Positions 3,951 through 53,520 of a stretch of 64,000 nucleotides of DNA are shown here, in pieces (within the stretch, counting starts at the first letter, position 1; each line of letters starts with the position of its first letter). Below the pieces are notes generated by a model, which worked only from the letters and a program-made list of their open reading frames with translations, was not told the origin of the DNA and did not search any database. A program made the position numbers and the translations under genes. The stretch lies in IMG/VR virus record IMGVR_UViG_3300023174_000042, positions 208,577 to 272,576 of that record; one strand, 5' to 3'.

Positions 3951-3967
3951 ATTACAAATAAAAAAAA

Positions 3968-4874: not shown

Positions 4875-4889
4875 ATATTTTACATTTAG

Positions 4890-4974
4890 CAGAGGAGGAG
4901 GGATTCGAACCCCCGGATCCGTAAAGATCAACGGTTTTCAAGACCGCCTCATTCGACCGCTCTGACACTCCTCT
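4890..4974 (-). tRNA. tRNA-Ser(TGA)
   Basis: GCGGT-CTTGAAA-ACCGT, long variable arm, G73. Confidence 0.93.
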
Positions 4975-25881: not shown

Positions 25882-26059
25882 AACTTTATTTTTTTTTATT
25901 ATTTATTTATTTATAAATATATCATAAAATAAAAAACCCCCACTTTAAGGGAGAGGATTTAATTTTCAATTATCCGATATACGGTGTTTTTTTTAAAAAT
26001 TAGTAGAAATTTAAAATTGGTCTTTATATTTATCGATATCTGAAATAATTTGTTTTTTA

Positions 26060-26488
26060 CTAAAAATCTTGATCATCATCATTATACATATGATCTCCCC
26101 ACTGATAAGGTTTTTCACTTTCAACCCACATACGATTTTTACCGTGGGACCCCTTTCTAATTCCTATCTTTATACTTTTAATTCCATTTTTTGAAATACC
26201 TTTAACGATTTCAAAAAAAGTTTTTTTAACATCAGAAAAATCCATAGAAACCTTGTCTCTTTGATACATAATGTCAGCATCAGATTTATTCATATATGCG
26301 CCATATAAATCTTTAATAACATTTTTTAATTGTTGATCATTTGAATTTTCTACTTCATCCATGACATCTTCAATATCATCTTTTGAAGGTTCTCCCAAGA
26401 AGGTTCTTCTTAAAAAATTTGTTTCAGAAATAACACGTTTAACAATACGAGTTAAATCTCTTTCTGTTAGTCTTACAATTCTTTTCAT
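26060..26488 (-). CDS. leader-bearing cassette protein
   Basis: MKRIVRLTERDLTRIVKRVISE; start reassigned. Confidence 0.8.
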   Translation of the reverse strand: MKRIVRLTERDLTRIVKRVISETNFLRRTFLGEPSKDDIEDVMDEVENSNDQQLKNVIKDLYGAYMNKSDADIMYQRDKVSMDFSDVKKTFFEIVKGISKNGIKSIKIGIRKGSHGKNRMWVESEKPYQWGDHMYNDDDQDF

Positions 26489-26555
26489 AATATTTTTATT
26501 TATAAATATATTATAAAACAAAAAACCCCACTTTAAGGGAGGGGGGGTTTTTTTA

Positions 26556-26954
26556 TTATCCTTTATTAGCTGTTTTTTTAAATTTATAAGTTTTGTAATC
26601 TCCTAAATCTTTTAAAATTTTGTTGTGGTCTACAAGGTAATCAGGTGGTGATAAAGGGTATGTTTTATTTATTATGGTTTTTCCATTAACAGATACAATC
26701 AACTGTATCTTTTTAGAACTTGAGCTATAGTAGATATAAGCACCATTACTATCATCACCTTTACTTAAACCATTAAATACACCATCAGGACCAAGGACAC
26801 TACTAGCATTATTTAGTTTTTCAAACCCGTATGGGGTAAGTGCTTGAGCAAGATGATACATAGGACTATGTGTTCCACCTTCCATTTCTTCATTAATAAC
26901 TCGTCTTACAATTCGAGCCAAGTCTGATTCTGTTAATCTTACAATTCTTTTCAT
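26556..26954 (-). CDS. leader-bearing cassette protein
   Basis: MKRIVRLTESDLARIVRRVINEEM; start reassigned. Confidence 0.8.
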   Translation of the reverse strand: MKRIVRLTESDLARIVRRVINEEMEGGTHSPMYHLAQALTPYGFEKLNNASSVLGPDGVFNGLSKGDDSNGAYIYYSSSSKKIQLIVSVNGKTIINKTYPLSPPDYLVDHNKILKDLGDYKTYKFKKTANKG

Positions 26955-27018
26955 AATATTTTTATTTATAAATATATCAATCAAAAAAAAAAAACGATTT
27001 TTTTATAAAAATTTTTTT
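26882..27018. repeat. near-identical ~135-bp promoter+leader repeat, copy 1
   Basis: Nearly identical to 27399-27537; related copy 29694-29845. Confidence 0.9.
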
Positions 27019-27129
27019 TCAGTATTTGACCATATTTGAAATGGGGGGGTTAATTTATTTATAAATATATCATAAAATAAAAAACCCCACTGATGAGGTG
27101 GGGGATTTAATATGTTGTATGTTTAATTA

Positions 27130-27471
27130 TTATATTTTTGATGTTATTGTCGAATAAACTTTATCAACCACTCTATGATCTCCACTCACTGTACCATTTA
27201 CTCCAGGTTTACCGTATCTGAACACTCCTCTTAGATTCGATGGATTTTTAATATCAAAATGATAATATTGTACATAACTAGCATTTGGGTCTTTACCTTT
27301 TTGTAGCATTTCGTTTCCATCGGGATCTGTAGAATATTTAAACCCTTTAGGTTCATAATGGTTTCTTAATTTTTTCCAAACGCAATCAGCGTCGCATCCC
27401 ATTTCTTCATTAATAACTCGTCTTACAATTCGAGCCAAGTCTGATTCTGTTAATCTTATAATTCTTTTCAT
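27130..27471 (-). CDS. leader-bearing cassette protein
   Basis: MKRIIRLTESDLARIVRRVINEEM; start reassigned. Confidence 0.8.
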   Translation of the reverse strand: MKRIIRLTESDLARIVRRVINEEMGCDADCVWKKLRNHYEPKGFKYSTDPDGNEMLQKGKDPNASYVQYYHFDIKNPSNLRGVFRYGKPGVNGTVSGDHRVVDKVYSTITSKI

Positions 27472-27537
27472 AATATTTTTATTTATAAATATATCAGTCA
27501 AAAAAAAAAAACGATTTTTTTTATAAAAATTTTTTTT
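27399..27537. repeat. near-identical promoter+leader repeat, copy 2
   Basis: See 26882-27018. Confidence 0.9.
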
Positions 27538-27575
27538 GTATTTGGTGTTTATTTGAAAAGGTGGGGTTAATTTAT

Positions 27576-28034
27576 TTATAAATATCTTTCTCTTAGAGTT
27601 TCTCTAACAATTCTTTTAATTAAAGATTCATCAATCACACTTTCACCTTTTCTTTTTTCATCATAACCATAGACAGTTGTATAAACACTGAATGGTAGAT
27701 CCTCCAAATACTCAAGATAAAAATCATCTCTAAGTTCTTGAATATACCAAATGTCGTTATCATAACCACTATCGGCCCAAACAGGATAATAGTCCTCACC
27801 ATTTTTTGTTATAGAATCAATAATAGTATCTATATCACCAACGGCATCTATTCCTTCACCAATAACACTTCTAACGACAATATGAAATTTAAATTCATAG
27901 ATGATATCACCAAGAACATAGTTATATCCATCATAAACATCTTCAGTATCTGTGAGCGTCATTTCAAACTCCTTGTTTTCAAAGAGTTTCTTTAATAAAT
28001 TTTTTAGTTTTTTATTTCCAATATTTATTTTCAT
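27576..28034 (-). CDS. acidic protein with leader-like motif at C terminus
   Basis: Ends IDESLIKRIVRETLRE. Confidence 0.7.
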   Translation of the reverse strand: MKINIGNKKLKNLLKKLFENKEFEMTLTDTEDVYDGYNYVLGDIIYEFKFHIVVRSVIGEGIDAVGDIDTIIDSITKNGEDYYPVWADSGYDNDIWYIQELRDDFYLEYLEDLPFSVYTTVYGYDEKRKGESVIDESLIKRIVRETLRERYL

Positions 28035-28363
28035 GGATCAACAAAATTAAACACCCAAACTGCGGTCCATTTACCATCTTTCTTTGGGAATAATGACTCA
28101 AACATCTCATCAATATCATTTGTTATGGGTGAGTTATCTGATTCTCCATCATGAAATGATTGTTCATGATCATTTGTTTTAATATTAAACCTATACAACG
28201 GAACCTTATATGATTTCGGATGTCTAAACATAAATGGTTCAACTTTAACACCATCGATTCCTTCATACCAAGGATATTCAGATAGAATATAATCAATATA
28301 TTTTTCAAATACTTTGATCTTTCTAAGAGACTCCGCTTGATCTTCAGTTATAATGATTTTCAT
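28031..28363 (-). CDS. leader-bearing hypothetical protein
   Basis: MKIIITEDQ. Confidence 0.75.
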   Translation of the reverse strand: MKIIITEDQAESLRKIKVFEKYIDYILSEYPWYEGIDGVKVEPFMFRHPKSYKVPLYRFNIKTNDHEQSFHDGESDNSPITNDIDEMFESLFPKKDGKWTAVWVFNFVDP

Positions 28364-28755
28364 AAAAATAAATGAAATCCTCCGTTTAGTATTTGTTCAA
28401 CATTTTGATCATATCTTTTATTGAACCAATCAACTACCATTTGTTTATTAGGGATATAATCCATAATTGTGTTATATATATCTTCTCTAATATACAAACT
28501 TTTTGGATTTTCAATCGGCATAATTCTACTTTGTGGGTCATCTGAATCCCAATAGGAACTTTTAAATGGTTCTACAACTCTAAAGAGCATTTTTTTTAGA
28601 TGAGGATTATAATACCCAACACTAGTTTTATGAAAACTCCAAGGGTCTTTAATAACGTGAGATTCCAAATTATCTAAGTCCAAGTCAGAAAACATGGAGT
28701 CAAAGAATTTCTCAATAAGTGTTTCGTTAATAATTCTTTTAATTATATGATCCAT
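28360..28755 (-). CDS. leader-bearing hypothetical protein
   Basis: MDHIIKRIINE. Confidence 0.75.
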   Translation of the reverse strand: MDHIIKRIINETLIEKFFDSMFSDLDLDNLESHVIKDPWSFHKTSVGYYNPHLKKMLFRVVEPFKSSYWDSDDPQSRIMPIENPKSLYIREDIYNTIMDYIPNKQMVVDWFNKRYDQNVEQILNGGFHLFL

Positions 28756-28840
28756 AATGATAAATAGTTAGGATTTTCTAAAATTTTTTCTGGAAATTTT
28801 TTTTCAGTATTTGACCATAATTGAAATGGGGGGTCATGTT

Positions 28841-29260
28841 TTAGAAATCCTCTTCTTTAAAATACATATCAATAATATCTGAGAATCTTAAACCCATTAT
28901 TGCGATTCCAAGTTGTTCGGGTATTTCATTTTCAATATATATATTTCCATTCTCATCAATAAACTTCTCATGATCCCCCACATCTAAATAAAGATATTTT
29001 TTCCCGTCAAGTTCAAAAAGATACATAGGTCCATATTTGTTTAAATAACGATTAATCAATCCAGGTGAAATATATCCAGCAAATTCCATTGGAATATCAT
29101 AAGTTGAGGTTATTTGTTGAATGCCATTTGTAAAATCAATACCCAACTTGTTTTTTAAAAACTTTTTGTTTTTTTCTAACATAGAGTCATTTTCACTAAT
29201 CACTCGTTTAACGAGGTTAGTTAATTGTCCGTATTGATCTTCAGTTATAATGATTTTCAT
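28841..29260 (-). CDS. leader-bearing protein; paralog of one module of the 1018-aa polyprotein
   Basis: MKIIITEDQY..VKRVISE; EKNKKFLKNKLGIDF. Confidence 0.8.
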   Translation of the reverse strand: MKIIITEDQYGQLTNLVKRVISENDSMLEKNKKFLKNKLGIDFTNGIQQITSTYDIPMEFAGYISPGLINRYLNKYGPMYLFELDGKKYLYLDVGDHEKFIDENGNIYIENEIPEQLGIAIMGLRFSDIIDMYFKEEDF

Positions 29261-29333
29261 ATTAGATAAATATAATGGAAAATAAAAAACCCCACTCTTA
29301 TGAAGATGGGGGTTTAGTAATAACAATATGTTT

Positions 29334-29765
29334 TTAATTTAGTCCTTTAATTATTTTTTTTACTGTTGAGATAACATTTTGTGGGTTTGAGTAGTCTAAT
29401 GTAAGGTCGTCTGTATAATATTTACCGTCAAAACTAGGAGATTTACCGGTTAATGTTTCGTATGCATCGGCTGTGTCCTCGTCTTGAGTTCCAAACTTTA
29501 ATCTTTGGTCATCTGAGGATACGCTAATACCCCATGGTTTTTTTTTCCCTGCATCACTATGGTTTCCCCAATTTAATGATGTGATTTTTTTTCCTTCATA
29601 CGTAAAAGGAATTATTTTTGGGCTATTTCCTGATACATCGGTAAATGATTTTAAACCCGAATAAATAATTGGCCAATTATCAGTAGCACCTTTCATTTCT
29701 TCTTTAATAACTCTTTTAACAATTCTTGCTAAATCCGATTCTGTTAATCTTATAATTCTTTTCAT
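29334..29765 (-). CDS. leader-bearing cassette protein
   Basis: MKRIIRLTESDLARIVKRVIKEEM. Confidence 0.8.
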   Translation of the reverse strand: MKRIIRLTESDLARIVKRVIKEEMKGATDNWPIIYSGLKSFTDVSGNSPKIIPFTYEGKKITSLNWGNHSDAGKKKPWGISVSSDDQRLKFGTQDEDTADAYETLTGKSPSFDGKYYTDDLTLDYSNPQNVISTVKKIIKGLN

Positions 29766-33379: not shown

Positions 33380-33637
33380 CTAAAAAACTTTAAATTGACA
33401 GGTGATATAAAAATCAAATGGAAACATATTTGACATATCTTCTTCTAATTGTTTTAGTATATTCAACTCTCTTCCTTTTGTTCCAAAAAACTTATGAGCT
33501 TTTTGTGCTGTATTGCAGTGCAAAGTAATAAAAACAATTTTTTGATTGTCGTTATATCTAAATTTTAAATCATCATAATCATGTGGAACAATTAACTTAA
33601 AATAATCTAATATGACTTTATCTAATTTATTTTCCAT
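33380..33637 (-). CDS. hypothetical protein (possible KH-like GxxG)
   Basis: FFGTKGREL. Confidence 0.55.
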   Translation of the reverse strand: MENKLDKVILDYFKLIVPHDYDDLKFRYNDNQKIVFITLHCNTAQKAHKFFGTKGRELNILKQLEEDMSNMFPFDFYITCQFKVF

Positions 33638-33924
33638 GATCCATATTTGTATTCTTTAATTATTGGTTTTATATCAATCTTTGGATAATTTATATATTCA
33701 ACCAATAATTTAACTTTAAAATTAGGTAAGTATTTTTTTATTTGAACTCTGACATATCTAATGTCATCTTCGCTATTGTATTTTGCGTTATCGTATTTTA
33801 TATTACTAAATTTAAGATCGTTAGTTAACACAATTTTATATGATCCATCTTCTTGTAAAGAAATTTGCATAGGTATATCAACGTCATCAAACAAGGATTC
33901 TATATATTTGGTTAAGTCTTTCAT
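33622..33924 (-). CDS. hypothetical protein
   Basis: 100-aa ORF. Confidence 0.6.
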   Translation of the reverse strand: MKDLTKYIESLFDDVDIPMQISLQEDGSYKIVLTNDLKFSNIKYDNAKYNSEDDIRYVRVQIKKYLPNFKVKLLVEYINYPKIDIKPIIKEYKYGSWKIN

Positions 33925-34622: not shown

Positions 34623-37600
34623 CTAATCCCAATAACCAATTTGAATTGTTTCCATCATCCAAGAAAGAATTGATAATAACTCTTCATTAGTTAAGCTGTT
34701 AATTGTTGTTAGGTATTGGTCTTTTGTTATCCTCTGACCATAATTATCTTCATAATATTCCCATATTTCAACAGCAATTTGGTCGCTATCTTGAACCATA
34801 ATATCATAAATTAATTTGGTATTACTTAGTCGTATTTTTAGACCAAAAAGAGAACCACTATTTTTACTACTCATCCCATCATGTTCTAAAACATATTCTC
34901 TAATATATTGTTTAATTATTTTTTTTGGATTGTCTATTTTATTTAAAATTGATTTGACTTGATTGAAGTCTAATCCTGACATTTCAATAAAGTTGTATAA
35001 TCCGTCTTTTTCTATAATTTTTTGTAATGATTGTTTTTTATTATCCGATTCATTTATATTTTTATCAAAATGTATGTGATATTTGAAATTAAGTGGAAAT
35101 ATATCAAGATCCTCCATAACTTGTTTTCCTACTTTTTTAATAACTGAGTTAATTCCACCACCCAATTTGACGGACTCAACTGGATCAAAAAATATATTTA
35201 CAATAACATCATCAAATTGTTCATCGTAATATAACATGAATTTTTTTACACTCAGATATTCGTTGGAGTTTAAATAATCTTCTACATTTTGAATCAATTT
35301 ATTAAACTTTCTTTCTTGTTTAGATTCGTCAGATTCGTTTATAACATTACCTTCATCATCATATTTTATTTTTTGAACATCAATATAAAGGTCTGCATTT
35401 TTATATTTCCAATCCCAACCGTAACCCCACCATGGAGATAAAATAACACCATCTCCTGTCAGTTCCATAATTTCATCTATTATTTTATGTGTAAACCAAT
35501 TATCGTAGTTTGCTGCGGTATCTTCCACATCATGAAAGACTTTGATAAGTGGTTTTCCTTGATAATTTGTATCGACTTCAATAAATTCAACCTCATCAAA
35601 AAGATTATAAATCATTTCTTTTACTAACTTAAGTTTTTTATCTTCTGATTTATTTTCTGATTCCATCAAATCATCTATTTTTTGACATTTTGTTGTGTCA
35701 TACGCTAAATAAAGATTATCAACAATTGGAAAAAAATCTTTTATCATTTTTTTTATCTCGGTTCTTGTTTCGTGAAATGTAAAAGGTCTAAATTTGTTTT
35801 TTTTGTATTTTAGAATCAATCTTAAAGAAGGTTTTTCAGAATATTTTGAATCAAAAAAACTATCTATTTCAATCCCACATAACAATTCTTTATCAACGAC
35901 ACTGTATACCATGTCATTTAAAAGTTTTTCATATTTTGAAAAGTCATTATGTTCAAATTTACTTTCTGATTCCACAAGTTCTGAATCTTCCCTTAATGTT
36001 CTTCTATTAGGTGAATCTTCAGGCCAAGAATTTAAAATATCTTCACTACTTCCTGTCCCTTCATATTTTAAAGTTATCGCCTCTTTTGGGATATCTTGAA
36101 ATGTTACAATATGTTTTGACCTTGACTCAAAATGTCTATCTTTAAACCATTTAACATCTGGAATCTTTGTTGTGTCAATAAACCAAATGTCGTCATCATA
36201 TGTTGAATCAAACCAAGCTCTTTTGTTTGTTGAGTTGGTTGCAAAAATTGCTGGTTTACATTTAACCCCATAACCCACATATATTTTATAACATTCTCCG
36301 GCTCTTACTTTAAGACCGTTTTCCATTATCTTATCTCTGAACTTTGGATTGGATTTATGGACAACAATCTGATTGGGTTTTACTTCTTTACCCGCCGGAC
36401 TATAATCTTCGTTTTCGTTTAATACTTCATCAGAATTTTCTTCATTAAAAAATAAATCCACAATAGTTTTAAGTGAAATTCCTGTGTGGTCAATTTTAAT
36501 TTTTTCTGTATATTCTCGGTCTGTATAATTTAAACCGTCTTCACTATCTATAACTAAACCTTCATCACCATTACCCGTAATATATAAAGGATTGTATAAG
36601 ATATATTCTTTATTAATTTTCATTAGATAACAAGGACCATGATTGTTCATAAATCGGTTTAACCAATCATTTGAAATAAAATTAAAAGTTTGCCACGGTA
36701 AATCCCAAGCACTTTGAACTAATTCTATTTTACCATCGAAATCAATTCCTAATTTGTTTTTTATAAAATTCTTATTTTTTTCTTCTAACTTATTTTCATT
36801 TAAAAAACTATTTTCTTCTTCATTACAGTTCGAAGTTTGTTCTCCACGAACACCAATTACTACTCCTGTATAAGTTGCAATTTCTTTTGAAATGTCATCT
36901 AAAACTTCAATATACATGTTTCTTATACCTTGTGTCATGGGCCAAAGTTTTGTTCCGTAACCTCCAATAAATAAAACTGTAACTTCAGGTATATTAAAAA
37001 CTTCGTTTAATGTGATTTCATAAGAACAAATGATATGATTATATTCAGGAAGTATTAGGTCTTCCATAATCATTTTTGTTATTTTTAAAAGTTTTTTTAA
37101 ATCCTTTTCACTTTTGTTTGAACTTTCATTTAAACTTTCAGATTCACCATAAAGTTTGTTGTGTATTCTTATCACATCTTTTTTTGAAAAAGAATATTCA
37201 TCCTCATGTATATCGACATCTTTTCCGTTTATTTGTTTAATATCAAAATAATTGGAGTCTTTAAAATTAAGTGTTTTTGTTTTTATTTTTCCTGTGGTAT
37301 TATCGTTTTGAATTACGGCGATTATGGATTTTAAAGTTTCATTTTCACTTGGACTTAATTTATCTTCGTCATAAATAAGATTTAATTCAGGCCAAGAATT
37401 TGTTTCCGATATATTTTTTCTAATGTTTATTATTTCATACTGAAGTGGAAATACGATAGGTTTTGGGTCTCTGAAATAATCATATACTGAAAAATCAACA
37501 ACACCTGTTAAATCATCTAATATTTCAGAAAATTCAGGATCATTCTTGAATGCTTTTTTGAGGTTTTTTAATCCTCCAACCATGTCAATAGCATCAAAGA

Positions 37601-37679
37601 TACCATTATCTTCAATAACTTGTTTCAACTCTTGTTGGAGTCTATTTTCTTTTAAGATATGTCTAATCAGTTCTCTCAT
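34623..37679 (-). CDS. leader-bearing modular polyprotein (~8 modules joined by I/L-x-E linkers), includes ART-fold-like module
   Basis: MRELIRHILKE; linkers SLNES, FLNEN, VLNEN, LVES, LMES, VINES, NINES. Confidence 0.8.
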   Translation of the reverse strand: MRELIRHILKENRLQQELKQVIEDNGIFDAIDMVGGLKNLKKAFKNDPEFSEILDDLTGVVDFSVYDYFRDPKPIVFPLQYEIINIRKNISETNSWPELNLIYDEDKLSPSENETLKSIIAVIQNDNTTGKIKTKTLNFKDSNYFDIKQINGKDVDIHEDEYSFSKKDVIRIHNKLYGESESLNESSNKSEKDLKKLLKITKMIMEDLILPEYNHIICSYEITLNEVFNIPEVTVLFIGGYGTKLWPMTQGIRNMYIEVLDDISKEIATYTGVVIGVRGEQTSNCNEEENSFLNENKLEEKNKNFIKNKLGIDFDGKIELVQSAWDLPWQTFNFISNDWLNRFMNNHGPCYLMKINKEYILYNPLYITGNGDEGLVIDSEDGLNYTDREYTEKIKIDHTGISLKTIVDLFFNEENSDEVLNENEDYSPAGKEVKPNQIVVHKSNPKFRDKIMENGLKVRAGECYKIYVGYGVKCKPAIFATNSTNKRAWFDSTYDDDIWFIDTTKIPDVKWFKDRHFESRSKHIVTFQDIPKEAITLKYEGTGSSEDILNSWPEDSPNRRTLREDSELVESESKFEHNDFSKYEKLLNDMVYSVVDKELLCGIEIDSFFDSKYSEKPSLRLILKYKKNKFRPFTFHETRTEIKKMIKDFFPIVDNLYLAYDTTKCQKIDDLMESENKSEDKKLKLVKEMIYNLFDEVEFIEVDTNYQGKPLIKVFHDVEDTAANYDNWFTHKIIDEIMELTGDGVILSPWWGYGWDWKYKNADLYIDVQKIKYDDEGNVINESDESKQERKFNKLIQNVEDYLNSNEYLSVKKFMLYYDEQFDDVIVNIFFDPVESVKLGGGINSVIKKVGKQVMEDLDIFPLNFKYHIHFDKNINESDNKKQSLQKIIEKDGLYNFIEMSGLDFNQVKSILNKIDNPKKIIKQYIREYVLEHDGMSSKNSGSLFGLKIRLSNTKLIYDIMVQDSDQIAVEIWEYYEDNYGQRITKDQYLTTINSLTNEELLSILSWMMETIQIGYWD

Positions 37680-38323
37680 TAATATAATCCTCTTAATCTA
37701 TCATACTCAACGTTACGAAGTTTTTCTAAATATGTTTTTTCAATCCATCCTGGACTTTCTTCTTCTTGTTTCATTATGGCATCTCTTCTAAAAAGTGTGG
37801 TTTTAAGAATAAGTTCTATCATATCCTCCTCAGTCACGCCTTCAGGTTTTGTCATTGGTGGAACACAAGTTTGAGCATCTCTATCATCTATATTAAATTC
37901 AGAAATATGAATGTCATTTCTACCCATCTTACTTTGAATTTCACCTAAATAGGTGTCGTCAAACCATTCTTCAAAAAGGTATTTTAAGTAACTTGCTCTA
38001 ACAGGAATATCAGACATCAACTCTTTAAATATATCATTTGGAATATAAATTGAACCTGATTCAAAATCTCTTTCTTCAGTTTTTCTTCTATCGTCAAAAA
38101 CATCACTATTATCTTCAAAAAATAATATAAATTTCATTATTTCTTTTCCATGATTACACCATTCAAAATCATGTCTTGTTTCCCACGATTTGTCATGATA
38201 CATTTTTGCACCATCAAAATAGTTGTTTAACCACCTATAAACAAGTTGTTCTACCTTTGGTGTAGGTTTAGAATATTTTCTAGTAACCTCATCTTCTAAT
38301 ATTAATTTAATTAAATTTCTCAT
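37679..38323 (-). CDS. leader-bearing hypothetical protein
   Basis: MRNLIKLILE. Confidence 0.75.
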   Translation of the reverse strand: MRNLIKLILEDEVTRKYSKPTPKVEQLVYRWLNNYFDGAKMYHDKSWETRHDFEWCNHGKEIMKFILFFEDNSDVFDDRRKTEERDFESGSIYIPNDIFKELMSDIPVRASYLKYLFEEWFDDTYLGEIQSKMGRNDIHISEFNIDDRDAQTCVPPMTKPEGVTEEDMIELILKTTLFRRDAIMKQEEESPGWIEKTYLEKLRNVEYDRLRGLY

Positions 38324-38757
38324 CTAAATTTAAATCTATCTGGTTCTAATTTTTTTATATCGTTAAATTGATCTTTAACCGTTAAATGCTCAGGAAGCAT
38401 TTCATAAATGTCATTTAATTCTTGTTTTATTTTTTTATAATCTTCAAACATTTCATCACTTGTCATTTCATTTTTAATATTTAATATTGAAACGGCATAT
38501 GGATAATCTTCGTTGGATAATTCATTTTGGTATCTTTTGTGATAGGGGTTTAAGTCACTATTATAAAATTCTTTTAGTTTTTTTATATCACAAATAATAT
38601 TAATATCAATTGAAAAATTACCATCATTACCTAATTCCCACCCAATGATAAATGGATAAGTTTTTTTTATTATTTTAATTACAAGGTCAATTCCTTTTTC
38701 AAGAGTTTTTGAATCATCCGTTTCTTCTTTTAATATATGTCTAATCAGTTCTTTCAT
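38320..38757 (-). CDS. leader-bearing hypothetical protein
   Basis: MKELIRHILKEET. Confidence 0.75.
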   Translation of the reverse strand: MKELIRHILKEETDDSKTLEKGIDLVIKIIKKTYPFIIGWELGNDGNFSIDINIICDIKKLKEFYNSDLNPYHKRYQNELSNEDYPYAVSILNIKNEMTSDEMFEDYKKIKQELNDIYEMLPEHLTVKDQFNDIKKLEPDRFKFR

Positions 38758-39079
38758 TACACATTACTTGTTCTAAAAACTTTTTAATTGTTCTAACTAT
38801 TTTTTGTCTGTCAGGATCATTCTCATTTGAGAAATTATCAACAGGTTCAATAACATTATTTTCTTGTAACATATTCAAAATTTTTTGTATTTGTCTTTTT
38901 TTATTATCAAAATTAGAAATTGAGTAATATTTATCATCTATATTAAAGTAAATTGTTTCGAATTTGAATGTTTCGAGATCAATTTCTTTTTTTTGATATC
39001 TTCGAAGCAAAAAATTCATAACTATCTGATCAATCTCTTCAGTTTCTTCTTTTAATATATGTCTAATTAACTCTTTCAT
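38741..39079 (-). CDS. leader-bearing hypothetical protein
   Basis: MKELIRHILKEET. Confidence 0.75.
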   Translation of the reverse strand: MKELIRHILKEETEEIDQIVMNFLLRRYQKKEIDLETFKFETIYFNIDDKYYSISNFDNKKRQIQKILNMLQENNVIEPVDNFSNENDPDRQKIVRTIKKFLEQVMCNERTD

Positions 39080-39513
39080 TATGCGTCGTATTCGTCTTGA
39101 AATAATATAAACTCTAAAGTTATCATAAATGGTTCATCGCCGTAACTATTCCATTTCATAGCAATTGGCATGCAACTCATAAACCAATCATTGTCAGGTC
39201 CTCTTTTTATTAAACCACCACTTTCAGTGAATGTATATTGTCCTTGTATTTTATAAACTTCGTCTTCCAATTTATCAATATGTTTTGCAATACCTCCAAA
39301 ATCATGGTCTTCATAGTATGATTTTACAATAAGTTTTCCTTCAATATAAGGATGTTTTAAAATAAAACTAATATCTTTTATTTCTATAGAATCAATTTTA
39401 GAAGAAACATTACTTTCAAATATGTATTGAAGTTTTTGCATAGAGTTTTTGAACCTTTCTTCAAGATTGTTATCCTCATCTTCTTTTAATATATTTTTAA
39501 TTAATTTTTTCAT
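39079..39513 (-). CDS. leader-bearing hypothetical protein
   Basis: MKKLIKNILKE. Confidence 0.75.
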   Translation of the reverse strand: MKKLIKNILKEDEDNNLEERFKNSMQKLQYIFESNVSSKIDSIEIKDISFILKHPYIEGKLIVKSYYEDHDFGGIAKHIDKLEDEVYKIQGQYTFTESGGLIKRGPDNDWFMSCMPIAMKWNSYGDEPFMITLEFILFQDEYDA

Positions 39514-39564
39514 ATTTTATAAATACTTGAAATTATATAAAAACAAAAAAATCAATTTATGATT

Positions 39565-41061
39565 CTAACTGATTTGTCTAATAGCACTTTCTACTTTATC
39601 TTGATTTTTTAACTTGGTATTTTTTCTATCTTTGATTGCCAATTCAATTAATTGTTGATCCGATAGTCCGTTTTTGATTCCATTTTCCAAACTTTCAGCA
39701 AATTTTTTGAAAAACCCCGGTCCATTCCAACAAGCATATGACATATGAAGAGTTAAACCTGGTATTGATTGAATTTTTTCTTTAGTTTTTGGATCTTTTA
39801 CAAAATTTGACATATTTTTGTCAAAAGATCTTTTCATTATTTTAACTGCCAAATTTTTCAAAGATTGTTCTTTGTCTCCACCTCGATATAACCATTTCCA
39901 TTCTTTACAAAAGTCATCCATGTTTGACCAAGTGGTATTTGGTCCAACACCATTTGATTTAGCCCCAGCACCATATTTTTCTCCATCTATAATTTGAAAA
40001 AATTCTTTACCTTCAGGTGATGACTCAATATTTCCGTTATATCTGTCCAATCCAAACATTGTTTCTGTAGATTTTCCCATATTACCACCTGGATGCTTAC
40101 AAAACGGATTCCAATATCCGCCTTCAAACTTATCAATCACAATTTTTGTAACATTTTCAAAATTTGACAAATCAACAGCAGATAAATTGTTTTCATCAGA
40201 TTGACTTTCCTTACATATCTTTTGAACATCAGATACGTTAAATTCTTTTTTTCCTGTTTTTTCTTCCATAGCACTTTGAGTTTTAGGTCCAAAATATCCA
40301 TCTTGATTTATACCCAAGCAACCTTGCACTTGATATATAATTCCATTAGTATTTGGAGATTTATATTTAGTTCCGACATCTTTACAACCTTTTTTAAAAT
40401 TTGGTCCATCACAATCGGAGTATTTTTTTAATTTATCTGATATATCACTAACACTAGAACCACCACCTATAAGTGATATATCGTCACTTGTTTCGATTTC
40501 AGTTGGTTTGTCTGTCCTATTATATTCACCTTTACCTTCATGTGGAGGATAGTTTTTTGGTAAAGAATATTTGTAAAAAAATTGTCTAATATAAACACCA
40601 TCAGGGTTTTTGAAGTCTAATACTAATTTGATGTTTTCTGCGTCTTTTTTTTCTAATTTTCTAGTCAAATCATTTATTTGTCTTTCTGCTCTTATGTCTG
40701 CTCTGTTTCCTGCGGATCCTCGTGTAGAGATTCCCATATAAGCAATTCCATCTTTACTTTCATCAATAGTTGCTTCCCAATTTACAGTATAATTTGTAGA
40801 ATCAACTTTTATATTCAAATTTGTAATGTCGGGATTAATTCCAGCATCGTAAACTTCTTTTAATTTTTCATTTATTTTTGTTGACATTTTTCCTCCAAAA
40901 CCATCTGATTTTCTACTTTCAAATGAATGTAATGCGTCCGCATCTCCTTTTGGTGCTGTATAACCACCTTTAACAACAATAGGTAATGAAATTGTTTGTT
41001 CTTTTAACAGTCCCATTATTGATTTAATTCTAAAAATTTCTTCGTTAATATAAGGTTTCAT
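39565..41061 (-). CDS. leader-bearing multidomain protein: peptidoglycan-binding-like module plus lysozyme-fold (GH108-like) domain
   Basis: VQGCLGINQDGYFGPKT; IDKFEGGY..ETMFGLD. Confidence 0.65.
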   Translation of the reverse strand: MKPYINEEIFRIKSIMGLLKEQTISLPIVVKGGYTAPKGDADALHSFESRKSDGFGGKMSTKINEKLKEVYDAGINPDITNLNIKVDSTNYTVNWEATIDESKDGIAYMGISTRGSAGNRADIRAERQINDLTRKLEKKDAENIKLVLDFKNPDGVYIRQFFYKYSLPKNYPPHEGKGEYNRTDKPTEIETSDDISLIGGGSSVSDISDKLKKYSDCDGPNFKKGCKDVGTKYKSPNTNGIIYQVQGCLGINQDGYFGPKTQSAMEEKTGKKEFNVSDVQKICKESQSDENNLSAVDLSNFENVTKIVIDKFEGGYWNPFCKHPGGNMGKSTETMFGLDRYNGNIESSPEGKEFFQIIDGEKYGAGAKSNGVGPNTTWSNMDDFCKEWKWLYRGGDKEQSLKNLAVKIMKRSFDKNMSNFVKDPKTKEKIQSIPGLTLHMSYACWNGPGFFKKFAESLENGIKNGLSDQQLIELAIKDRKNTKLKNQDKVESAIRQIS

Positions 41062-41093: not shown

Positions 41094-42548
41094 TTATACA
41101 GAATAAACAAACCTTTCATTTCCACAATTAAAAATTCTATAATATCCCAAAGTATTCATAATTTCCCGTTCAGTAAGTTTAGAATCATATCCCATTTTAA
41201 CTAATTTATGTTTTTGATAATTAATTCTATTTTTACGAACTTTATTTATGACATAACTATAGTTTGGTGGAGTAAAACCATGGGTTTCAAACCCTAACTT
41301 TTTATATAACTCCCCTGTTGCCCAAGAAATATCACAATAAGATAGGATTTTTTTTGGTTGATGATTGTTTAAAAAACATTTAAATAGTTTTGAAGCACCA
41401 CCAACAACAGAAATTCCAAGTTTATTACAAAATCTCACCAATTCATATTCACCTTCCTTTTGATTTTTATCTAATACTTTTCTAGTTTTCATAAATGTCA
41501 TCAAAGACACTAATTCACCTTCATAAAACAACCCATAATTAATATTAGTATTCACAAATCCTTGTAAATGGTTTTTATTTAGAAAATCCTTAATAACATG
41601 TTTTTCATCTATCTTCCTTATTGTTGTTTTTCTAGCAAAGATTTTTTTTGATTTTTTTATAACATTTGATATTATTGATTTTATAATGTCTAATTTGAAA
41701 TCAAAATCGTCTTCGTAAATGTGTATCAATTTGATGCCATATTTTTCACATAACTTTGTTTTTTCCAAATGATAATTTTTATTTACGTATAATTCTGAAT
41801 GCCATCTCATTCCATTGAATTCAAATCCCAATTTAAATTCTGGTAAATAGATATCAATTTCTTTTCTTTCGATTTTGAATGAATTAATTATTTCTCCATC
41901 ATAAATCTCTCCAATAATTTTATTTAATAAGACTTCTTTACCTGAAATGTTTTTTTCAACAGGTTTACACTTTGAACATAGTTCAGTTTTTATAATTTTT
42001 CTATTTGAAAATACAGATTTTTTAATTTTGGTTGGTCCGTGGATTTTACAATTAACGACAAAATTTTCTTCATCTTGATCAACAACATCAGGATTATTTT
42101 TTAAAAAAAGTTTAAAAATTGTTTCAACACGTTTTTGTTTTTCACTATTTAGGTTTTCAACTTTCCACTTGTTACTTTGCCTAAAATGCTCTGAACCCCA
42201 CTTTTTTAAAAAGGTTTTTTTGGTTTTTTCTTTAAAATTATCTGTTTTGAATACACACTTATCTCCGTATTTAAGTTCAAATGTTTTTTCTTTTTTGTTT
42301 TTTGAACATTTTGAAGAGCAAGTATAGTAACCCCCTTTATTTACAGATTGATTGTATCGTCGATATTGAATTTTTACTTCTTTGTTACAAACATCACATT
42401 TTGCATCAACAAGCAAATGACTTTTGGGATTTACTAATTCTATAGGTATTATATTAACTTCATTTAAAACTATATCAATATTGTTTTTTTTATAATATTG
42501 AGCAACATTCCCAACAATTCTAATTTTTAATTTTTTTGTTAAAAGCAT
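41094..42548 (-). CDS. putative free-standing endonuclease (Zn-binding repeats, PD-(D/E)XK/Vsr-like core, GNAT-like C-terminal domain)
   Basis: KCDVC, EIDIYLPEFKLGFEFNG..WHS, ELVRFC..GGASKLF. Confidence 0.7.
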   Translation of the reverse strand: MLLTKKLKIRIVGNVAQYYKKNNIDIVLNEVNIIPIELVNPKSHLLVDAKCDVCNKEVKIQYRRYNQSVNKGGYYTCSSKCSKNKKEKTFELKYGDKCVFKTDNFKEKTKKTFLKKWGSEHFRQSNKWKVENLNSEKQKRVETIFKLFLKNNPDVVDQDEENFVVNCKIHGPTKIKKSVFSNRKIIKTELCSKCKPVEKNISGKEVLLNKIIGEIYDGEIINSFKIERKEIDIYLPEFKLGFEFNGMRWHSELYVNKNYHLEKTKLCEKYGIKLIHIYEDDFDFKLDIIKSIISNVIKKSKKIFARKTTIRKIDEKHVIKDFLNKNHLQGFVNTNINYGLFYEGELVSLMTFMKTRKVLDKNQKEGEYELVRFCNKLGISVVGGASKLFKCFLNNHQPKKILSYCDISWATGELYKKLGFETHGFTPPNYSYVINKVRKNRINYQKHKLVKMGYDSKLTEREIMNTLGYYRIFNCGNERFVYSV

Positions 42549-42612: not shown

Positions 42613-44202
42613 TTACCTATTTTCAGGTCTAAATCTATATGGATTGGCTTTGATTGCCGCTTTTGAAAAATAAGTCCCTTGTCCTTGTCGTCTGGCATTT
42701 TTTAATGATCTACCATATTCATTCATTTCGACTTCAAAATCAGGTTCGTAACGTTCATCATTTGATTGTTTAATTTTATCTCTTAAAGTTACAAAAAACT
42801 CCCTAGCCAATCTTTTCATGAATTTAACGTATTCAGCGTCTTCATCATCTTTTTTCTTATAGTATTTACTAACAGGAGGTCTTTTTGACCTATCTAAATA
42901 ACTTAAACCTGAAATATTAGTAATACATTTGTGTCCCCCACTGTTGGCTAAAATTAAATCCCAAGCAGATATTGTTATTTTGTCTAACACTTCACGTTGT
43001 TTATCTGTTAATGAATTAAATGGTTTTGACATAATAGAATCCAACATTTTGATATAAGAATCCGATCCTTCTTGTTTATCAAAAGAATTTGGATAAAGAG
43101 CCGTAAAGTCTTTTAATGTAAAACCAACAGATCCTTCACCAAAATCTTTGCTGTTTTCAGATATCCATTTAATTGTTGATAAAGGTATTTTTTTATTTTT
43201 TAATTCAGTTTCAAATTTCTTTAGAACTTCATCTTTAACTTCACCCAAATTAACACCTTTCAATGCTCTTTCTTTTTTAAATGGATTACAAGATGCTTGA
43301 ATCATTCCCATTGGCCAAACAAGAAGTAAAAAGTCTGCGTCAGGATTGTTTTTAAATGGTGTATAACGATCATAAGATCCTACGTCAAAAAGGTTACCTC
43401 CGCCATATTGAGTAATAATTCCATCAATTACCTTCACATTAGGAGAAGTTTTTTGTCTTTCAACATAAGATTCTTTATTTTTTTCTAATTGTTGTATATC
43501 CAAATAACCATTATTTTTCATCCAATCTTTAATATTTAAAAGAATATTCAAAAGTGAAGGTTTTGACTTCATTACAAGTTGTGTTAAAAAACCTTTCTTG
43601 TTTTTAAATGCCAATAGCAACTTGTTTGCCACAAGTCCCATCATTTTTTTATTTCCTTTAACATCTCTTTCTCGATCAATTTTGAATAAATAGTTCATGA
43701 CCTCACTTGGTGTTATATCATATTTAGCAAAATCTGCTGAGTCCACCATATTAATCAATTCAACATCTTCTTGAGTGAAAATATCTTTTGGTGATAATAC
43801 TTGAGAAATTGTTTCAACGTTAGATCTTGATGGTCTAAAACTTGTTGCGGTTCCACTTTCAACCCCTGCTTGTGTATCATGGTGATCGGTATGAATTACA
43901 TACATAGGTTTACCATGGGCAAAGTCAACCAAAACAGGCATAATTTCACCCTCACCTTCAGGTTTTTTTACAGCAAATTCTTTATCTCCATATTGTATTG
44001 TTTCAGCATCAACAACTTTAATTCCATTTTTTTCCAAATAGTCTTTCATAGCCAAGGCAGTTGTTACCCCATCTAAATCCATGTGAAAATAGATTTTAGC
44101 CATTTTATATCTTTTTGCTAGATCTTTGATACCTCTAATACCACTTTCATTCAATAATTTTGTGGTTTCTTCTTTTATTATTCGTCTTATTAAGTTTTTC
44201 AT
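42613..44202 (-). CDS. leader-bearing DHH-family phosphoesterase
   Basis: HMDLDG, VDF, TDHH, GGH; MKNLIRRIIKEE..LLNES leader. Confidence 0.8.
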   Translation of the reverse strand: MKNLIRRIIKEETTKLLNESGIRGIKDLAKRYKMAKIYFHMDLDGVTTALAMKDYLEKNGIKVVDAETIQYGDKEFAVKKPEGEGEIMPVLVDFAHGKPMYVIHTDHHDTQAGVESGTATSFRPSRSNVETISQVLSPKDIFTQEDVELINMVDSADFAKYDITPSEVMNYLFKIDRERDVKGNKKMMGLVANKLLLAFKNKKGFLTQLVMKSKPSLLNILLNIKDWMKNNGYLDIQQLEKNKESYVERQKTSPNVKVIDGIITQYGGGNLFDVGSYDRYTPFKNNPDADFLLLVWPMGMIQASCNPFKKERALKGVNLGEVKDEVLKKFETELKNKKIPLSTIKWISENSKDFGEGSVGFTLKDFTALYPNSFDKQEGSDSYIKMLDSIMSKPFNSLTDKQREVLDKITISAWDLILANSGGHKCITNISGLSYLDRSKRPPVSKYYKKKDDEDAEYVKFMKRLAREFFVTLRDKIKQSNDERYEPDFEVEMNEYGRSLKNARRQGQGTYFSKAAIKANPYRFRPENR

Positions 44203-44220
44203 TTATAATAAATATCTTAC

Positions 44221-45438
44221 TTAAACAAAAACTTGAGGAATATCATCCCAAGACGTTGTATATTTTTGTGTAATGTAATCTTGTTTCATTTCCCAATCAT
44301 GTGTTTGATTAACAGGAGACTTAATAATTTCAACCTGATCAAAAAATAATGACGTTTGAATAACGTTATCTGGTGTTAGTTCATTAAATACAATTCCACA
44401 TTTTTTATACTTTTCAGATTTATTACAAATTATTTTAAATTGTTCATATATCTGAGACCAAATTATATCAGCGTCTCTTGTTGGCGTTTGTAGTTTAATT
44501 ACTTTTGAATAATGATATTTATCTCCTTTATGATAATTACCTGACACAAATATTGTTGCTTTATTTGCCAACAATTTGTTTTGAGTTAATTTTTTTACAC
44601 CATTTTTAATATATGTATACATTGCTTCTCCAAGTTGATCAAACTCTGACACATCTTTTCCAAATGACCTTGTGGATGCAATATTTTTTTTAGGTTTTAG
44701 TGTTTTTAAAATTGGATAACAATATAACCCTTGAAGTTCTAATTGTGTTCTAATTCCATTTATATTCATTAATTTTTTTACAGTATATTCATGTGTGTTA
44801 ATAAATTGACCTACCGATTCTACTTCAATATTTTTTAGTTTTTTTGCCCATTTTCTTCCAATTCCCCAAACTTCATCAACGTCAATTTGATAACAAAGAC
44901 TTCTAAAGTTTTTAATATCCCAATAAGAACACACACCATTATAACTTGGTGATTTTTTTGCTAAATATGATGTGAGTTTTGCCAATGTTTTATTTGGTCC
45001 AACACCAATTGATACAGGAATACCTACTTTTCTTTTAACTTCTTCTTTAATTAACAAAAGTGTGTCATTTAGTTCTTCTTTTGGTATGTTTGAAAAATCA
45101 ACGAAAGCCTCATCAATCGAATATACTTCAATATCATTTCCAAACTCAGAGATTACTTTCATTACTCTATCAGACATATCACCATACAAATTGTAATTTG
45201 ATGAATACACACAAAATCTATGTTGATTCATAAATTCTCTACTTTGAAAAAATGGTTCTCCCATTTTAATTCCAAGGTCTTTTGCTTCTTGAGATCTAGC
45301 AATTACACACCCATCGTTGTTTGATAAAACAACCGTAGGTCTTCCAATCGATTCGGGATTAAATAATCTTTCACAACTAACATAAAAGTTGTTACAATCA
45401 ATAATTCCAATTTTTTTTAAGTTTTCTTTAATATCCAT
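44221..45438 (-). CDS. umuC: Y-family DNA polymerase V catalytic subunit
   Basis: IDCNNFYVSCER, VLSNNDGCVIARS, YSIDEAF, C-terminal WEMKQ..YTTSWDD. Confidence 0.92.
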   Translation of the reverse strand: MDIKENLKKIGIIDCNNFYVSCERLFNPESIGRPTVVLSNNDGCVIARSQEAKDLGIKMGEPFFQSREFMNQHRFCVYSSNYNLYGDMSDRVMKVISEFGNDIEVYSIDEAFVDFSNIPKEELNDTLLLIKEEVKRKVGIPVSIGVGPNKTLAKLTSYLAKKSPSYNGVCSYWDIKNFRSLCYQIDVDEVWGIGRKWAKKLKNIEVESVGQFINTHEYTVKKLMNINGIRTQLELQGLYCYPILKTLKPKKNIASTRSFGKDVSEFDQLGEAMYTYIKNGVKKLTQNKLLANKATIFVSGNYHKGDKYHYSKVIKLQTPTRDADIIWSQIYEQFKIICNKSEKYKKCGIVFNELTPDNVIQTSLFFDQVEIIKSPVNQTHDWEMKQDYITQKYTTSWDDIPQVFV

Positions 45439-45734
45439 GTGACCTTGCCCCATAAGTTTTTTTGTTCTTTGTATTCTCTAAGTTTAAAAAATGTTTTTTC
45501 TGTTAAGACAACCAAATCCCCGATTTTGGGTTCTTCATTTTTATCTATTACAAGAGTATCTCCTTGTTTTACACCAAAAACTTCTGGACCTGAATATTTA
45601 AAATAAAAAGTTGTATAAAAGTCTTTAACAATAAGTTCATTAAGGTCCAATCTTTTATCAACATAAGTTTCTGCAGGTGAAGCAAATCCTGTTGTTGTAG
45701 AATTAATTTGAATAGGATTTTTGTGTCTTAACAT
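45417..45734 (-). CDS. umuD: UmuD-like subunit, apparently protease-dead
   Basis: GFASPA..Y...LDLN.LI, GDTLVID, WGKVT; adjacent to umuC. Confidence 0.8.
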   Translation of the reverse strand: MLRHKNPIQINSTTTGFASPAETYVDKRLDLNELIVKDFYTTFYFKYSGPEVFGVKQGDTLVIDKNEEPKIGDLVVLTEKTFFKLREYKEQKNLWGKVTWILKKT

Positions 45735-45776
45735 ATACTAAAATATAGTAAATGTAAATGATAAAAAAAAGAATTT

Positions 45777-46127
45777 TTACTTATTTTTTACAACTTTAAA
45801 TAATGCTTTTTCTATTGAATAACCGTTATTAATAAAGTATTTTAGACTATCAACGTTGCAGTGCGCATACACAATTTTTTCAGTGTCATGAATTTTTGAA
45901 TCTCTATAATTCCATAACAATTTATATATTCCTCTGTTTCTATAATCGTCTAATACAAAAGCATGACACAGATATATTACAGAGTCGTGCTCAACATAAG
46001 AAACAATACCTACTAATTTATCTTTAATATAACACCCATAATAAGTTGCGTGTTCATCTAATAGATCTGGTTTTACTTCTTTGAAGTTTTTATAAACCTC
46101 ATCATAATTTACTTTTGTAATTTCCAT
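45777..46127 (-). CDS. GNAT-family acetyltransferase
   Basis: FVLDDYRNRGIYKLL. Confidence 0.8.
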   Translation of the reverse strand: MEITKVNYDEVYKNFKEVKPDLLDEHATYYGCYIKDKLVGIVSYVEHDSVIYLCHAFVLDDYRNRGIYKLLWNYRDSKIHDTEKIVYAHCNVDSLKYFINNGYSIEKALFKVVKNK

Positions 46128-46261
46128 TTTATTGATATTATGTTTAATTTAATTGAATTTAAATTAATTTTGTATAGTTACAAGTTATAATTTTTGGTCT
46201 TATAAAAATATAGCATCAATAAAAGTTATTGAATGAAAAAAAATTTGATTATATTTGTATT

Positions 46262-52067: not shown

Positions 52068-52069
52068 AA

Positions 52070-53437: not shown

Positions 53438-53520
53438 ATTTTTATTATAATAAAATTCTTTTTTTAATATATACAAATAAATAATTTTTACATTCAAAAT
53501 AATTAAAGTAAAATTCATTT

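Follow-up and report, generated by a model that had tools for sequence, protein, structure and literature searches.

A candidate capsid-cargo polyprotein with inferred cleavable linkers in an uncultured T4-like phage of freshwater Bacteroidota

A 1,018-residue open reading frame (ORF; 34623..37679, minus strand; protein start, MRELIRHILKEN) lies in a 64,000-nucleotide stretch of the IMG/VR virus record IMGVR_UViG_3300023174_000042 (positions 208,577 to 272,576; hereafter the window), from an uncultured 272-kb T4-like phage of freshwater Bacteroidota. The ORF is intact, and the identical protein is encoded on four independent contigs from JGI and ENA. As noted in a preliminary description, the protein splits into eight modules at low-complexity linkers, which sit at aa 183 (SLNES), 293 (FLNEN), 420 (VLNEN), 562/568 (TLRED, LVES), 671 (LMES), 780 (VINES), and 875 (NINES). 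The strict motif [LIM][NRMKVS]E[SNQ] occurs nine times, against 1.08 expected from 20,000 shuffles (maximum, 6) and 1.3 per 1,018 aa in the other ORFs of the window. Pfam and PHROGs gave no family for the polyprotein or its neighbors, and tblastn against 50,697 phage records gave no match.

The chain starts with an 11-residue leader (37647..37679, minus strand; MRELIRHILKE↓N, where the arrow marks an inferred cut), an inferred capsid-targeting sequence ending in the L-x-E site. M1, L4, I5, H7, I8, L9, K10, and E11 are nearly invariant in 57 aligned homologues, and every full-length homologue starts with the leader, even when the first module is missing. Module M1 (37125..37646; aa 12 to 185, ending SLNE↓S; AF2 pLDDT about 75 to 88) is first in nearly all homologues and also exists as stand-alone genes (homologues P0146 and P0188). 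M2 (36795..37124; aa 186 to 295, ending FLNE↓N) has a predicted alpha-beta-beta-alpha-beta fold, and M3 (36414..36794; aa 296 to 422, ending VLNE↓N) is a rare cassette present in 3 of 120 homologues. M4 (35970..36413; aa 423 to 570, ending TLRED/ELVE↓S) has a C-terminal tail that is a decayed internal leader, with homologues showing QESIRRILREN at this position. M5 (35661..35969; aa 571 to 673, ending DLME↓S) is a rare cassette with the alpha-beta-beta-alpha-beta pattern, absent from the 85%-identical homologue P0002, and M6 (35334..35660; aa 674 to 782, ending VINE↓S) has the same pattern, is duplicated in some homologues, and occurs in stand-alone forms with the leader MNLQESIRRILREE. With hhalign, M2 and M5 against X0 gave 77% and 75% probability, respectively, and M6 against X2 gave 98%. 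M7 (35049..35333; aa 783 to 877, ending NINE↓S) is found stand-alone with a leader in L011 (MRKLILQILKET...) and in homologue P0201. M8 (34626..35048; aa 878 to 1018) is always the last module and the most conserved part, with all invariant columns of the 57-sequence alignment lying in M8 or at its N876-E877 boundary, and is stand-alone with a leader in homologue P0181. All modules are on the minus strand.

The homology of M3 to the stand-alone gene at 28841..29260 (minus strand), proposed in the preliminary description, was confirmed (36% identity over 109 aa; E = 2e-17 pairwise and 7e-14 in the window search). That gene carries the leader MKIIITEDQYGQLTNLVKRVISE↓N, and its leader end ISE↓N sits where the polyprotein has LNE↓N, 6 to 7 residues before the shared EKNK..KNKLGIDF block. 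The proposed similarity between M1 and M8 was not significant (BLAST E, about 0.3; hhalign probability, 9%), although the predicted secondary-structure order of the two modules is alike. Of the three smaller concatemers proposed, the gene at 23064 has one internal NINES, that at 31454 shares a short module with other genes but has no strict linker, and that at 15221 has none. Four leader-bearing genes (37679..39513, minus strand; 214, 145, 112, and 144 aa) with overlapping stop and start codons lie upstream and form one apparent operon with the polyprotein; the same gene order is found in a 283-kb relative, and the module of gene 38741-39079 is embedded in another polyprotein in L011.

Among 120 homologues, 37 module architectures were found, and insertions and deletions, which occur even between 85%-identical relatives, fall exactly on the linker motif. 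Module order is mostly collinear, with presence/absence variation and only a few permutations, so free shuffling is limited. The motif [LIM][NRMKVS]E[SNQ] is carried by 686 of 697 junctions, against 32 hits in 80,089 interior residues, with position preferences of L (56%), I (32%), and M (11%) at P3, N (70%) at P2, and S (92%) at P1′ (P1 Glu is fixed by the search pattern). Codons differ between linkers (Ser AGT/TCA/TCT/TCG), so selection acts on the protein. An AF2 model of the full-length protein gave confident separate modules, pLDDT below 50 at the linkers, and a pTM of 0.28, from which domain independence is judged.

Linkers and leader ends are the same motif and are interchangeable. Stand-alone M4, M6, M7, M8, and M3 paralogues carry an N-terminal leader ending in [IL]-x-E exactly where the polyprotein has a linker (stand-alone M4 forms carry four leader classes), homologue P0060 reads MRELIRHILKE↓SNSEK.., with the leader joined straight to M2, and full internal leaders survive in some fusions (QESIRRILREN; TIRETIKNILIQE↓VNKKYSKP). 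The polyprotein arose by in-frame fusion of neighboring leader-bearing genes, internal leaders shrank to the bare cut site, and cassettes are gained and lost by recombination at these sites. Within the window, 32 of 88 ORFs have the leader motif (ILKE↓N, VINE↓E, VISE↓N, LLKE↓Q, and others) in their first 34 aa, against 17 of 400 interior windows (P = 5e-15). The mature parts of proteins with the same leader show no similarity (all E > 0.05), which is the pattern of the T4 internal proteins Ip1 to Ip3 (PMC12373910). The T4 leaders were verified as MKTYQEFIAE↓A (IPIII) and MKTFKEFTSTTTPVSTITE↓A. The leader found here has no sequence similarity to the T4 capsid-targeting sequence.

No head genes were found in the window, but walking the same 272,587-bp contig (polyprotein at 26,250-29,306) located a T4-type head module about 24 kb outside it. 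This module encodes a 242-aa Peptidase_S77 protein (87,731-88,459) that is 31% identical to T4 gp21 and keeps the equivalents of the catalytic His85 (ELNHP) and Ser140 (SSRG). The gene order (portal, small proteins, protease, acidic scaffold-like protein, and Gp23-family capsid protein) matches T4 20-67-68-21-22-23. The N-terminal region of the capsid protein aligns with the T4 gp23 propeptide, and its inferred maturation site (SFLINE↓AS) sits over the known T4 site (SFLTE↓AE); T4 gp21 cuts after L/I-x-E (PMC9026906). The match in specificity rests on this homology and on the conserved capsid-protein site.

Module M4 was modeled separately (AF2 pLDDT, 80.7; pTM, 0.75) and is predicted to have a Tpt1/KptA-like fold of the ADP-ribosyltransferase superfamily. 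Foldseek gave 13 PDB hits at E ≤ 1e-3, all Tpt1/KptA (best E, 5.8e-5; probability, 1.0), but with a TM score of only about 0.45 and 14% identity, and profile searches against PDB sequences and Pfam gave nothing meaningful, so the assignment is tentative. Invariant residues include H441, R448, D497, and D514 (H19, R26, D75, and D92 of the module), and H441-K-S and F-A-T are invariant or nearly so. With the full-length model, there was no Foldseek hit at E ≤ 1e-3 in PDB; the weak best hits were tandem alpha-beta-beta-alpha-beta ring-building-motif domains of type III secretion basal bodies and the MamM C-terminal domain, which describe a fold type and not a function. BFVD was uninformative.

Taken together, these data support the interpretation in the preliminary description, that one leader packages many cargos that the prohead protease then releases, and we consider it probable, although packaging, cleavage, and injection are inferred without proteomic, N-terminal, or expression evidence. 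In the proposed mechanism, the basic amphipathic leader takes the whole chain into the assembling prohead core, as the T4 capsid-targeting sequence does, and the gp21-family protease cuts after Glu in each exposed [L/I/M]-x-E↓[S/N] site, once after the leader and once at each of the seven junctions. This would free eight small proteins, which stay in the head and enter the host with the DNA. M4, with its predicted ADP-ribosyltransferase fold, recalls T4 Alt, a head-packaged and gp21-processed ADP-ribosyltransferase; the other modules are small, unassigned alpha/beta domains, probably host takeover or antidefense factors. Some observations fit less easily. P2 Asn and P1′ Ser are conserved more tightly than T4 gp21 is known to require and could instead reflect a helix N-cap or another recognition, and leaders on a third of the ORFs in 64 kb would mean an unusually large set of packaged proteins. 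It is about as likely as not that these phages have turned the T4 capsid-targeting and prohead protease system into a general delivery platform, in which dozens of unrelated proteins are tagged by interchangeable leaders, one tag can load a combinatorially variable string of cargos, and the injected set evolves by cassette exchange at the cut sites. If so, injected-protein arsenals could be far larger and more modular than the T4 paradigm of three Ips plus Alt, the leader and [L/I/M]-N-E-S linkers could be used to predict virion-delivered effectors of Bacteroidota jumbo phages, and, as T4 capsid-targeting technology is already used to package foreign proteins, the polyprotein shows how several might be loaded with one tag.

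An uncleaved beads-on-a-string protein, packaged or not, with linkers kept as flexible hinges or helix N-caps after gene fusion, is possible but unlikely. The fusion origin is directly visible, S/N-x-x-E after the Glu resembles a helix N-cap, a helix starts 3 to 7 residues after each junction, and some large polyvalent proteins, such as the N4 virion RNA polymerase, are packaged unprocessed (PMC5512222). Relics should decay, however, yet P3/P1/P1′ hold at 98% of junctions across homologues down to about 45% identity, while the flanks and the codons vary; internal leaders are trimmed to exactly the protease motif, and the same motif ends every N-terminal leader and marks the capsid-protein maturation site. 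We consider it more doubtful still that the motif is read by something else, such as another phage or host protease acting after injection or a targeting system for a compartment other than the capsid. The specificity beyond L/I-x-E, which is not known for gp21, the very large number of tagged proteins, and a ClpB-like AAA+ protein encoded near the terminase would fit this view, but no other protease was found in the regions read, no genes for a phage nucleus or a secretion system were seen, and the inferred capsid-protein maturation site has the same I-N-E form.

That leaders and linkers are mainly DNA-level recombination joints, with no role as protein signals, appears improbable. Insertions and deletions do fall exactly on the motif, leaders are interchangeable between modules, and conserved leader DNA was proposed to mediate swapping of internal-protein genes in T-even phages (Repoila et al. 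1994, cited in PMC12373910); nonetheless, linker and leader codons differ at synonymous positions, including both Ser codon families, so the conserved unit is the peptide, and recombination can be a consequence of the motif rather than its function. An assembly chimera or a decayed run of genes read as a single ORF, suggested only by the unusual length in a region of small genes, is contradicted by the identical product on four contigs from different samples, by 269 full-length-range homologues, and by the syntenic position in the 283-kb relative.

The T4 internal proteins IPI/IPII/IPIII and Alt are among the closest known systems, sharing a short leader ending in L/I-x-E on otherwise unrelated small proteins, a gp21-family protease, a T4-type portal, scaffold, and capsid gene set, and hypervariable loci. 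Here, however, at least five leader classes exist, the family is vastly expanded (about a third of ORFs in 64 kb, against 3 Ips in T4), and up to about ten cargos are strung in one ORF with internal cut sites, which is not described for T-even Ips. Inner-body and ejection proteins of phiKZ, 201phi2-1, and SPN3US are head internal, have many paralogues, are cut at several sites after Glu by a diverged gp21 homologue, and are ejected into the host (PMC9026906), but the motif there is S/A/G-x-E, cleavage mostly removes propeptides, and the proteins are not cassette-like chains of independent domains with a single N-terminal tag. Polyvalent proteins of phages and conjugative elements (Iyer et al. 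2017, PMC5512222) are multidomain chains with highly variable architectures, thought to be packaged and injected, which include ADP-ribosyltransferase domains and were themselves likened to viral polyproteins. They are built from recognized conflict domains and released, where at all, by embedded peptidase domains (frequent but not universal), whereas no embedded peptidase was found here by Pfam, PHROGs, or Foldseek, and release is inferred to be in trans by the prohead protease at uniform linkers. Leaders are not mentioned in the bS21-phage paper.

An upstream motif, ATATTTAT, precedes 21 of 32 leader ORFs, against 14 of 56 others (P = 2.6e-4), and also lies upstream of TerL, portal, protease, and scaffold-like genes, which fits coexpression with head assembly, although its presence before a quarter of the nonleader genes means that it need not be specific to late genes. 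In the apparent operon, it occurs only before 39513. The sequence TATAAATA is overrepresented (47 against 16), but the common motif on the coding strand is ATATTTAT, and only the class-B genes have the palindrome that contains both; we therefore do not call it a T4-type late promoter. In the cultured relative Flavobacterium phage immuto, only small leader families were found in the 100 kb read; the phage has three MENFDLKKFLVENKLT...L[IL]xE proteins.

The ORF at 34623..37679 on the minus strand encoded a 1,018-aa protein beginning MRELIRHILKEN. The identical protein was encoded on four independent contigs from JGI and ENA, making an assembly artifact or a run of pseudogenes very unlikely. Short linkers occurred at aa 183 (SLNES), 293 (FLNEN), 420 (VLNEN), 562/568 (TLRED, LVES), 671 (LMES), 780 (VINES), and 875 (NINES). 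The strict pattern [LIM][NRMKVS]E[SNQ] was found 9 times, including the leader, against 1.08 expected from 20,000 shuffles (maximum, 6) and 1.3 per 1,018 aa in the other ORFs of the window. Modules were defined as M1 (aa 12-185), M2 (186-295), M3 (296-422), M4 (423-570), M5 (571-673), M6 (674-782), M7 (783-877), and M8 (878-1018). M3 was homologous to the stand-alone gene 28841-29260 (36% identity over 109 aa; E=2e-17). Two further claims of the preliminary description were weak: the proposed similarity of the first and last modules (M1 and M8) was not significant, and among the proposed smaller concatemers, only 23064 showed a clear internal NINES.

The window is the last 64 kb of a 272,576-bp metagenomic contig (JGI 3300023174 Ga0214921_10000035; GC content, about 28%), which exists in ENA as NODE_59 of 272,587 bp. 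No head or tail hallmark genes were found within the window. Walking leftwards along the contig reached a T4-type head module containing, in order, TerL, Portal_T4, small proteins, ribosomal protein bS21 on the opposite strand, Peptidase_S77, a very acidic 485-aa scaffold-like protein, and a Gp23-family capsid protein. This is the T4 order 20-67-68-21-22-23 and also the conserved context described for bS21-encoding phages of freshwater Bacteroidota (PMC9723584). The bS21 gene (16201-16389 of L008, a region of the same phage outside the window), located between the portal and protease genes, places the phage among, or next to, those phages, although the contig is not listed in the supplements of that paper. 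The identical protease was located on the same contig as the polyprotein (87,731-88,459 against 26,250-29,306), about 24 kb beyond the left edge of the window. The closest cultured relative by capsid protein was Flavobacterium phage vB_FspM_immuto (41% identity).

The protease was 31% identical to T4 gp21, kept ELNHP (T4 His85) and G-x-SSRG (T4 Ser140), and matched the solved T4 gp21 structure 5JBL (E=2e-14). T4 gp21 cuts after Glu in L/I-x-E (PMC9026906). The N terminus of the capsid protein aligned with the T4 gp23 propeptide (NKW..LEG, ..ENQ..SFL), with SFLINE↓AS lying over SFLTE↓AE, the known gp23 maturation site of T4 (here and below, an arrow marks the end of a leader or a known or inferred cut site). 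The inferred maturation site of the phage therefore has the I-N-E form found in the VINES and NINES linkers. The capsid protein of immuto has ..QIVSE↓ANV at the same place.

A search of 5.8 billion proteins identified 269 relatives of 560-1085 aa, all metagenomic and all called hypothetical, some of which were on contigs of 240-285 kb. Mapping of the eight modules, plus three further families found in the gaps (X0, X1, and X2), gave 37 architectures among 120 homologues. M1 was almost always first and M8 always last, M3 and M5 were rare, and X0 and X1 were common but absent from the protein of the window. The order was mostly collinear, with a few permutations and duplications. Out of 697 junctions, 686 carried the strict motif, against 32 hits in 80,089 interior residues. 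P3 was L/I/M, P2 was mostly N, and P1' was S in 92%, while P1 Glu was fixed by the search pattern. Linker codons differed (Ser was encoded by AGT, TCA, TCT, or TCG), so the peptide is what is conserved. Insertions and deletions fell exactly on the motif even between 85%-identical proteins; homologue P0002 lacked M5 and gained X0, and homologue P0004 lacked M3.

An exhaustive HMMER search (528 hits) showed that modules also occur as stand-alone genes, in which the linker is replaced by an N-terminal leader. Stand-alone M4 began MNLQESIRRILREE↓DYSPAGKE, M8 began MRLQENIRRILRET.., M6 began MNLQESIRRILREE↓TEGYKL.., and M7 began MNLQESIRRILREE↓VFESDESRQERKF; M4 was found behind four different leader classes. 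Homologue P0060 reads MRELIRHILKE↓SNSEK.., the polyprotein leader joined directly to the start of M2, and in homologues P0113 and P0120 the leader is followed directly by an X2 module. Exchange in both directions was evident on contig L011, which carries stand-alone M7 and M4, a different 620-aa polyprotein embedding the module encoded in the window by the separate gene 38741-39079, and a fusion that keeps a full internal leader, TIRETIKNILIQE↓VNKKYSKP (window gene 37679-38323 begins MRNLIKLILEDE↓VTRKYSKP). Some M4 tails still read QESIRRILREN before the next linker. The polyprotein therefore arose by fusion of adjacent leader-bearing genes, and the upstream genes in the window already overlap stop to start. 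Internal leaders decayed to the bare cut site, while one full leader stayed at the N terminus, as a “target once, cut everywhere” model predicts.

Out of 88 ORFs in the window, 32 had hydrophobic-hydrophobic-x-E-[ENSQTDG] within their first 34 residues, against 17 of 400 interior windows (odds ratio, 12.9; p=5e-15). The leaders fell into at least five classes: MKELIRHILKEE, MNLQEQIRRILKEE, MKRIIRLTESDLARIVRRVINEE, MKIIITEDQ...RVISE, and ...RIKSIMGLLKE. Proteins that share a leader share nothing else, and leader codons varied at synonymous positions. Five small genes at 25576-27471 and 29334-29765 (minus strand) share a nearly identical 23-aa leader (MKRIIRLTESDLARIVRRVINEE), while their mature parts are unrelated. 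This is the pattern of T4 Ip1-3, which share only the packaging leader and inhibit different GmrSD enzymes (PMC12373910); the T4 leaders were read from the genome as MKTYQEFIAE↓A and MKTFKEFTSTTTPVSTITE↓A. Leader-bearing proteins included a Phage_lysozyme protein (48182-49099), a likely peptidoglycan-binding hydrolase recognized by eye (39565-41061), and a 529-aa protein (42613-44202, minus strand; MKNLIRRIIKEE, followed directly by a second LLNES site) with a visible DHH motif (IHTDHHD) and only a weak DHH-family Pfam hit (E=0.0034), which could be a packaged phosphoesterase, possibly acting on nucleotide signals. Between leader-bearing genes, a 484-aa HNH/Hef-like homing endonuclease (41094-42548, minus strand; PHROG 3339, E=3e-100) matched huge metagenomic phages (LR7565xx) and Campylobacter and Klebsiella phages at 66-68% DNA identity and looks like a mobile insertion. 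In immuto (NC_055915; L013:7631-8931 and L019:1803-2318), three proteins share a different leader, M(E/A)(N/D)F(D/N)L(K/R)xFLxENKLT...L[IL]xE↓, and two begin MKKQILSEQF, a small counterpart of the leader system.

The 8-mer ATATTTAT was overrepresented (43 against 19.9 expected) and was mostly on the coding strand, 11-30 nt before start codons (e.g., 26497-26509, 26963-26975, 27480-27492, 39518-39525, and 44208-44215). It was located within 45 nt upstream of 21 of 32 leader ORFs against 14 of 56 others (p=2.6e-4), and also upstream of TerL, portal, protease, and scaffold-like genes (in L008, upstream of 10001, 13186, 15006, 16959, and 18040), which fits coexpression with head assembly but does not prove it. 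Before the class-B leader genes, including each of the five small genes sharing MKRIIRLTESDLARIVRRVINEE, it is part of the palindrome TATTTATAAATA, which contains the T4 late-promoter octamer TATAAATA. The 8-mer may be a phage promoter that gives very short 5' untranslated regions.

AF2 modeling of the full chain gave a pLDDT of 61.9 and a pTM of 0.28. M1, M2, M5, M6, and M8 were confident, whereas the linker stretches 180-191, 287-303, 555-578, 666-677, and about 870-882 fell below 50, which is consistent with independent domains on flexible tethers. M2, M5, M6, and M7 share an alpha-beta-beta-alpha-beta pattern, and profile comparisons linked M6 to X2 (98%), M2 to X0 (77%), and M5 to X0 (75%); several cassettes are therefore probably old paralogues. 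Judged by eye from the sequence pattern, several leaderless small ORFs next to the polyprotein (33380-33924, minus strand) and the X0/X1 modules of homologues appear to have the same layout of about 95 aa, suggesting one large, fast-evolving domain superfamily. Weak Foldseek hits to tandem ring-building-motif domains and to the MamM C-terminal domain reflect this fold type only. M4 modeled alone was confident (pLDDT, 80.7; pTM, 0.75), and all 13 of its PDB hits at E<=1e-3 were Tpt1/KptA RNA 2'-phosphotransferases (best E=5.8e-5; TM, about 0.45), followed weakly by PARP14/15 and DarT1. M4 is therefore predicted to have an ADP-ribosyltransferase-like fold, with H441-K-S and F-A-T invariant or nearly so and R448, D497, and D514 invariant. 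T4 Alt, a head-packaged, gp21-processed, and injected ADP-ribosyltransferase, is the obvious parallel.

We infer that the leader targets the chain to the prohead core, perhaps through the very acidic scaffold-like protein, since the leaders are basic; that the protease cuts at each site; and that the products are injected and act on the host. We consider this model as a whole likely, although it rests on inference. The main rival, an uncleaved multidomain protein whose linkers are relics, seems unlikely. Recognition of the motif by a different factor is more doubtful still, as are purely DNA-level recombination joints, given that the linker peptide rather than its codons is conserved, and an artifact is only a remote possibility.

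In function, the system is closest to the capsid-targeting leader, internal proteins, and Alt of T4, whose architectural criteria it fits, but it has no sequence homology to them. It shares multisite cleavage after Glu, here inferred, with the inner-body proteins of phiKZ and SPN3US. It shares variable multidomain architecture and the polyprotein analogy with polyvalent proteins (PMC5512222) but lacks their embedded peptidases. Leader-tagged cargo polyproteins, or such an expansion, were not described in the literature we searched, nor in the bS21-phage paper (PMC9723584); tagging of internal head proteins by a shared leader is already known from T4.

The window also contained auxiliary genes, including thymidylate synthase, a homologue of IMP dehydrogenase / GMP reductase, and lysozymes, and a cluster of six tRNA genes (Asp, Glu, Met, Ile, Phe, and Ser; 272-4974, minus strand). 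An 815-aa protein (15893-18340, minus strand) with a signal peptide, SprB repeats, and a CHU_C type IX secretion sorting domain is a phage-encoded substrate for type IX secretion and points to a Bacteroidota host. A UmuC-like Y-family polymerase (IMS/IMS_C), an overlapping UmuD-like gene, a GNAT gene, and, on the plus strand, a UvrC-like GIY-YIG/RNase H nuclease (44221-47536) together form a DNA-damage-tolerance set. A run of four family-2 (GT2) glycosyltransferase genes, together with neighboring genes of unknown function (49511-54102), may modify the cell surface or the DNA. Outside the window, in the same phage lineage, a 676-aa ClpB/ClpA-like double AAA+ protein and a small UVR-domain protein (L007:7330-9360) were encoded a few kilobases from the terminase gene.
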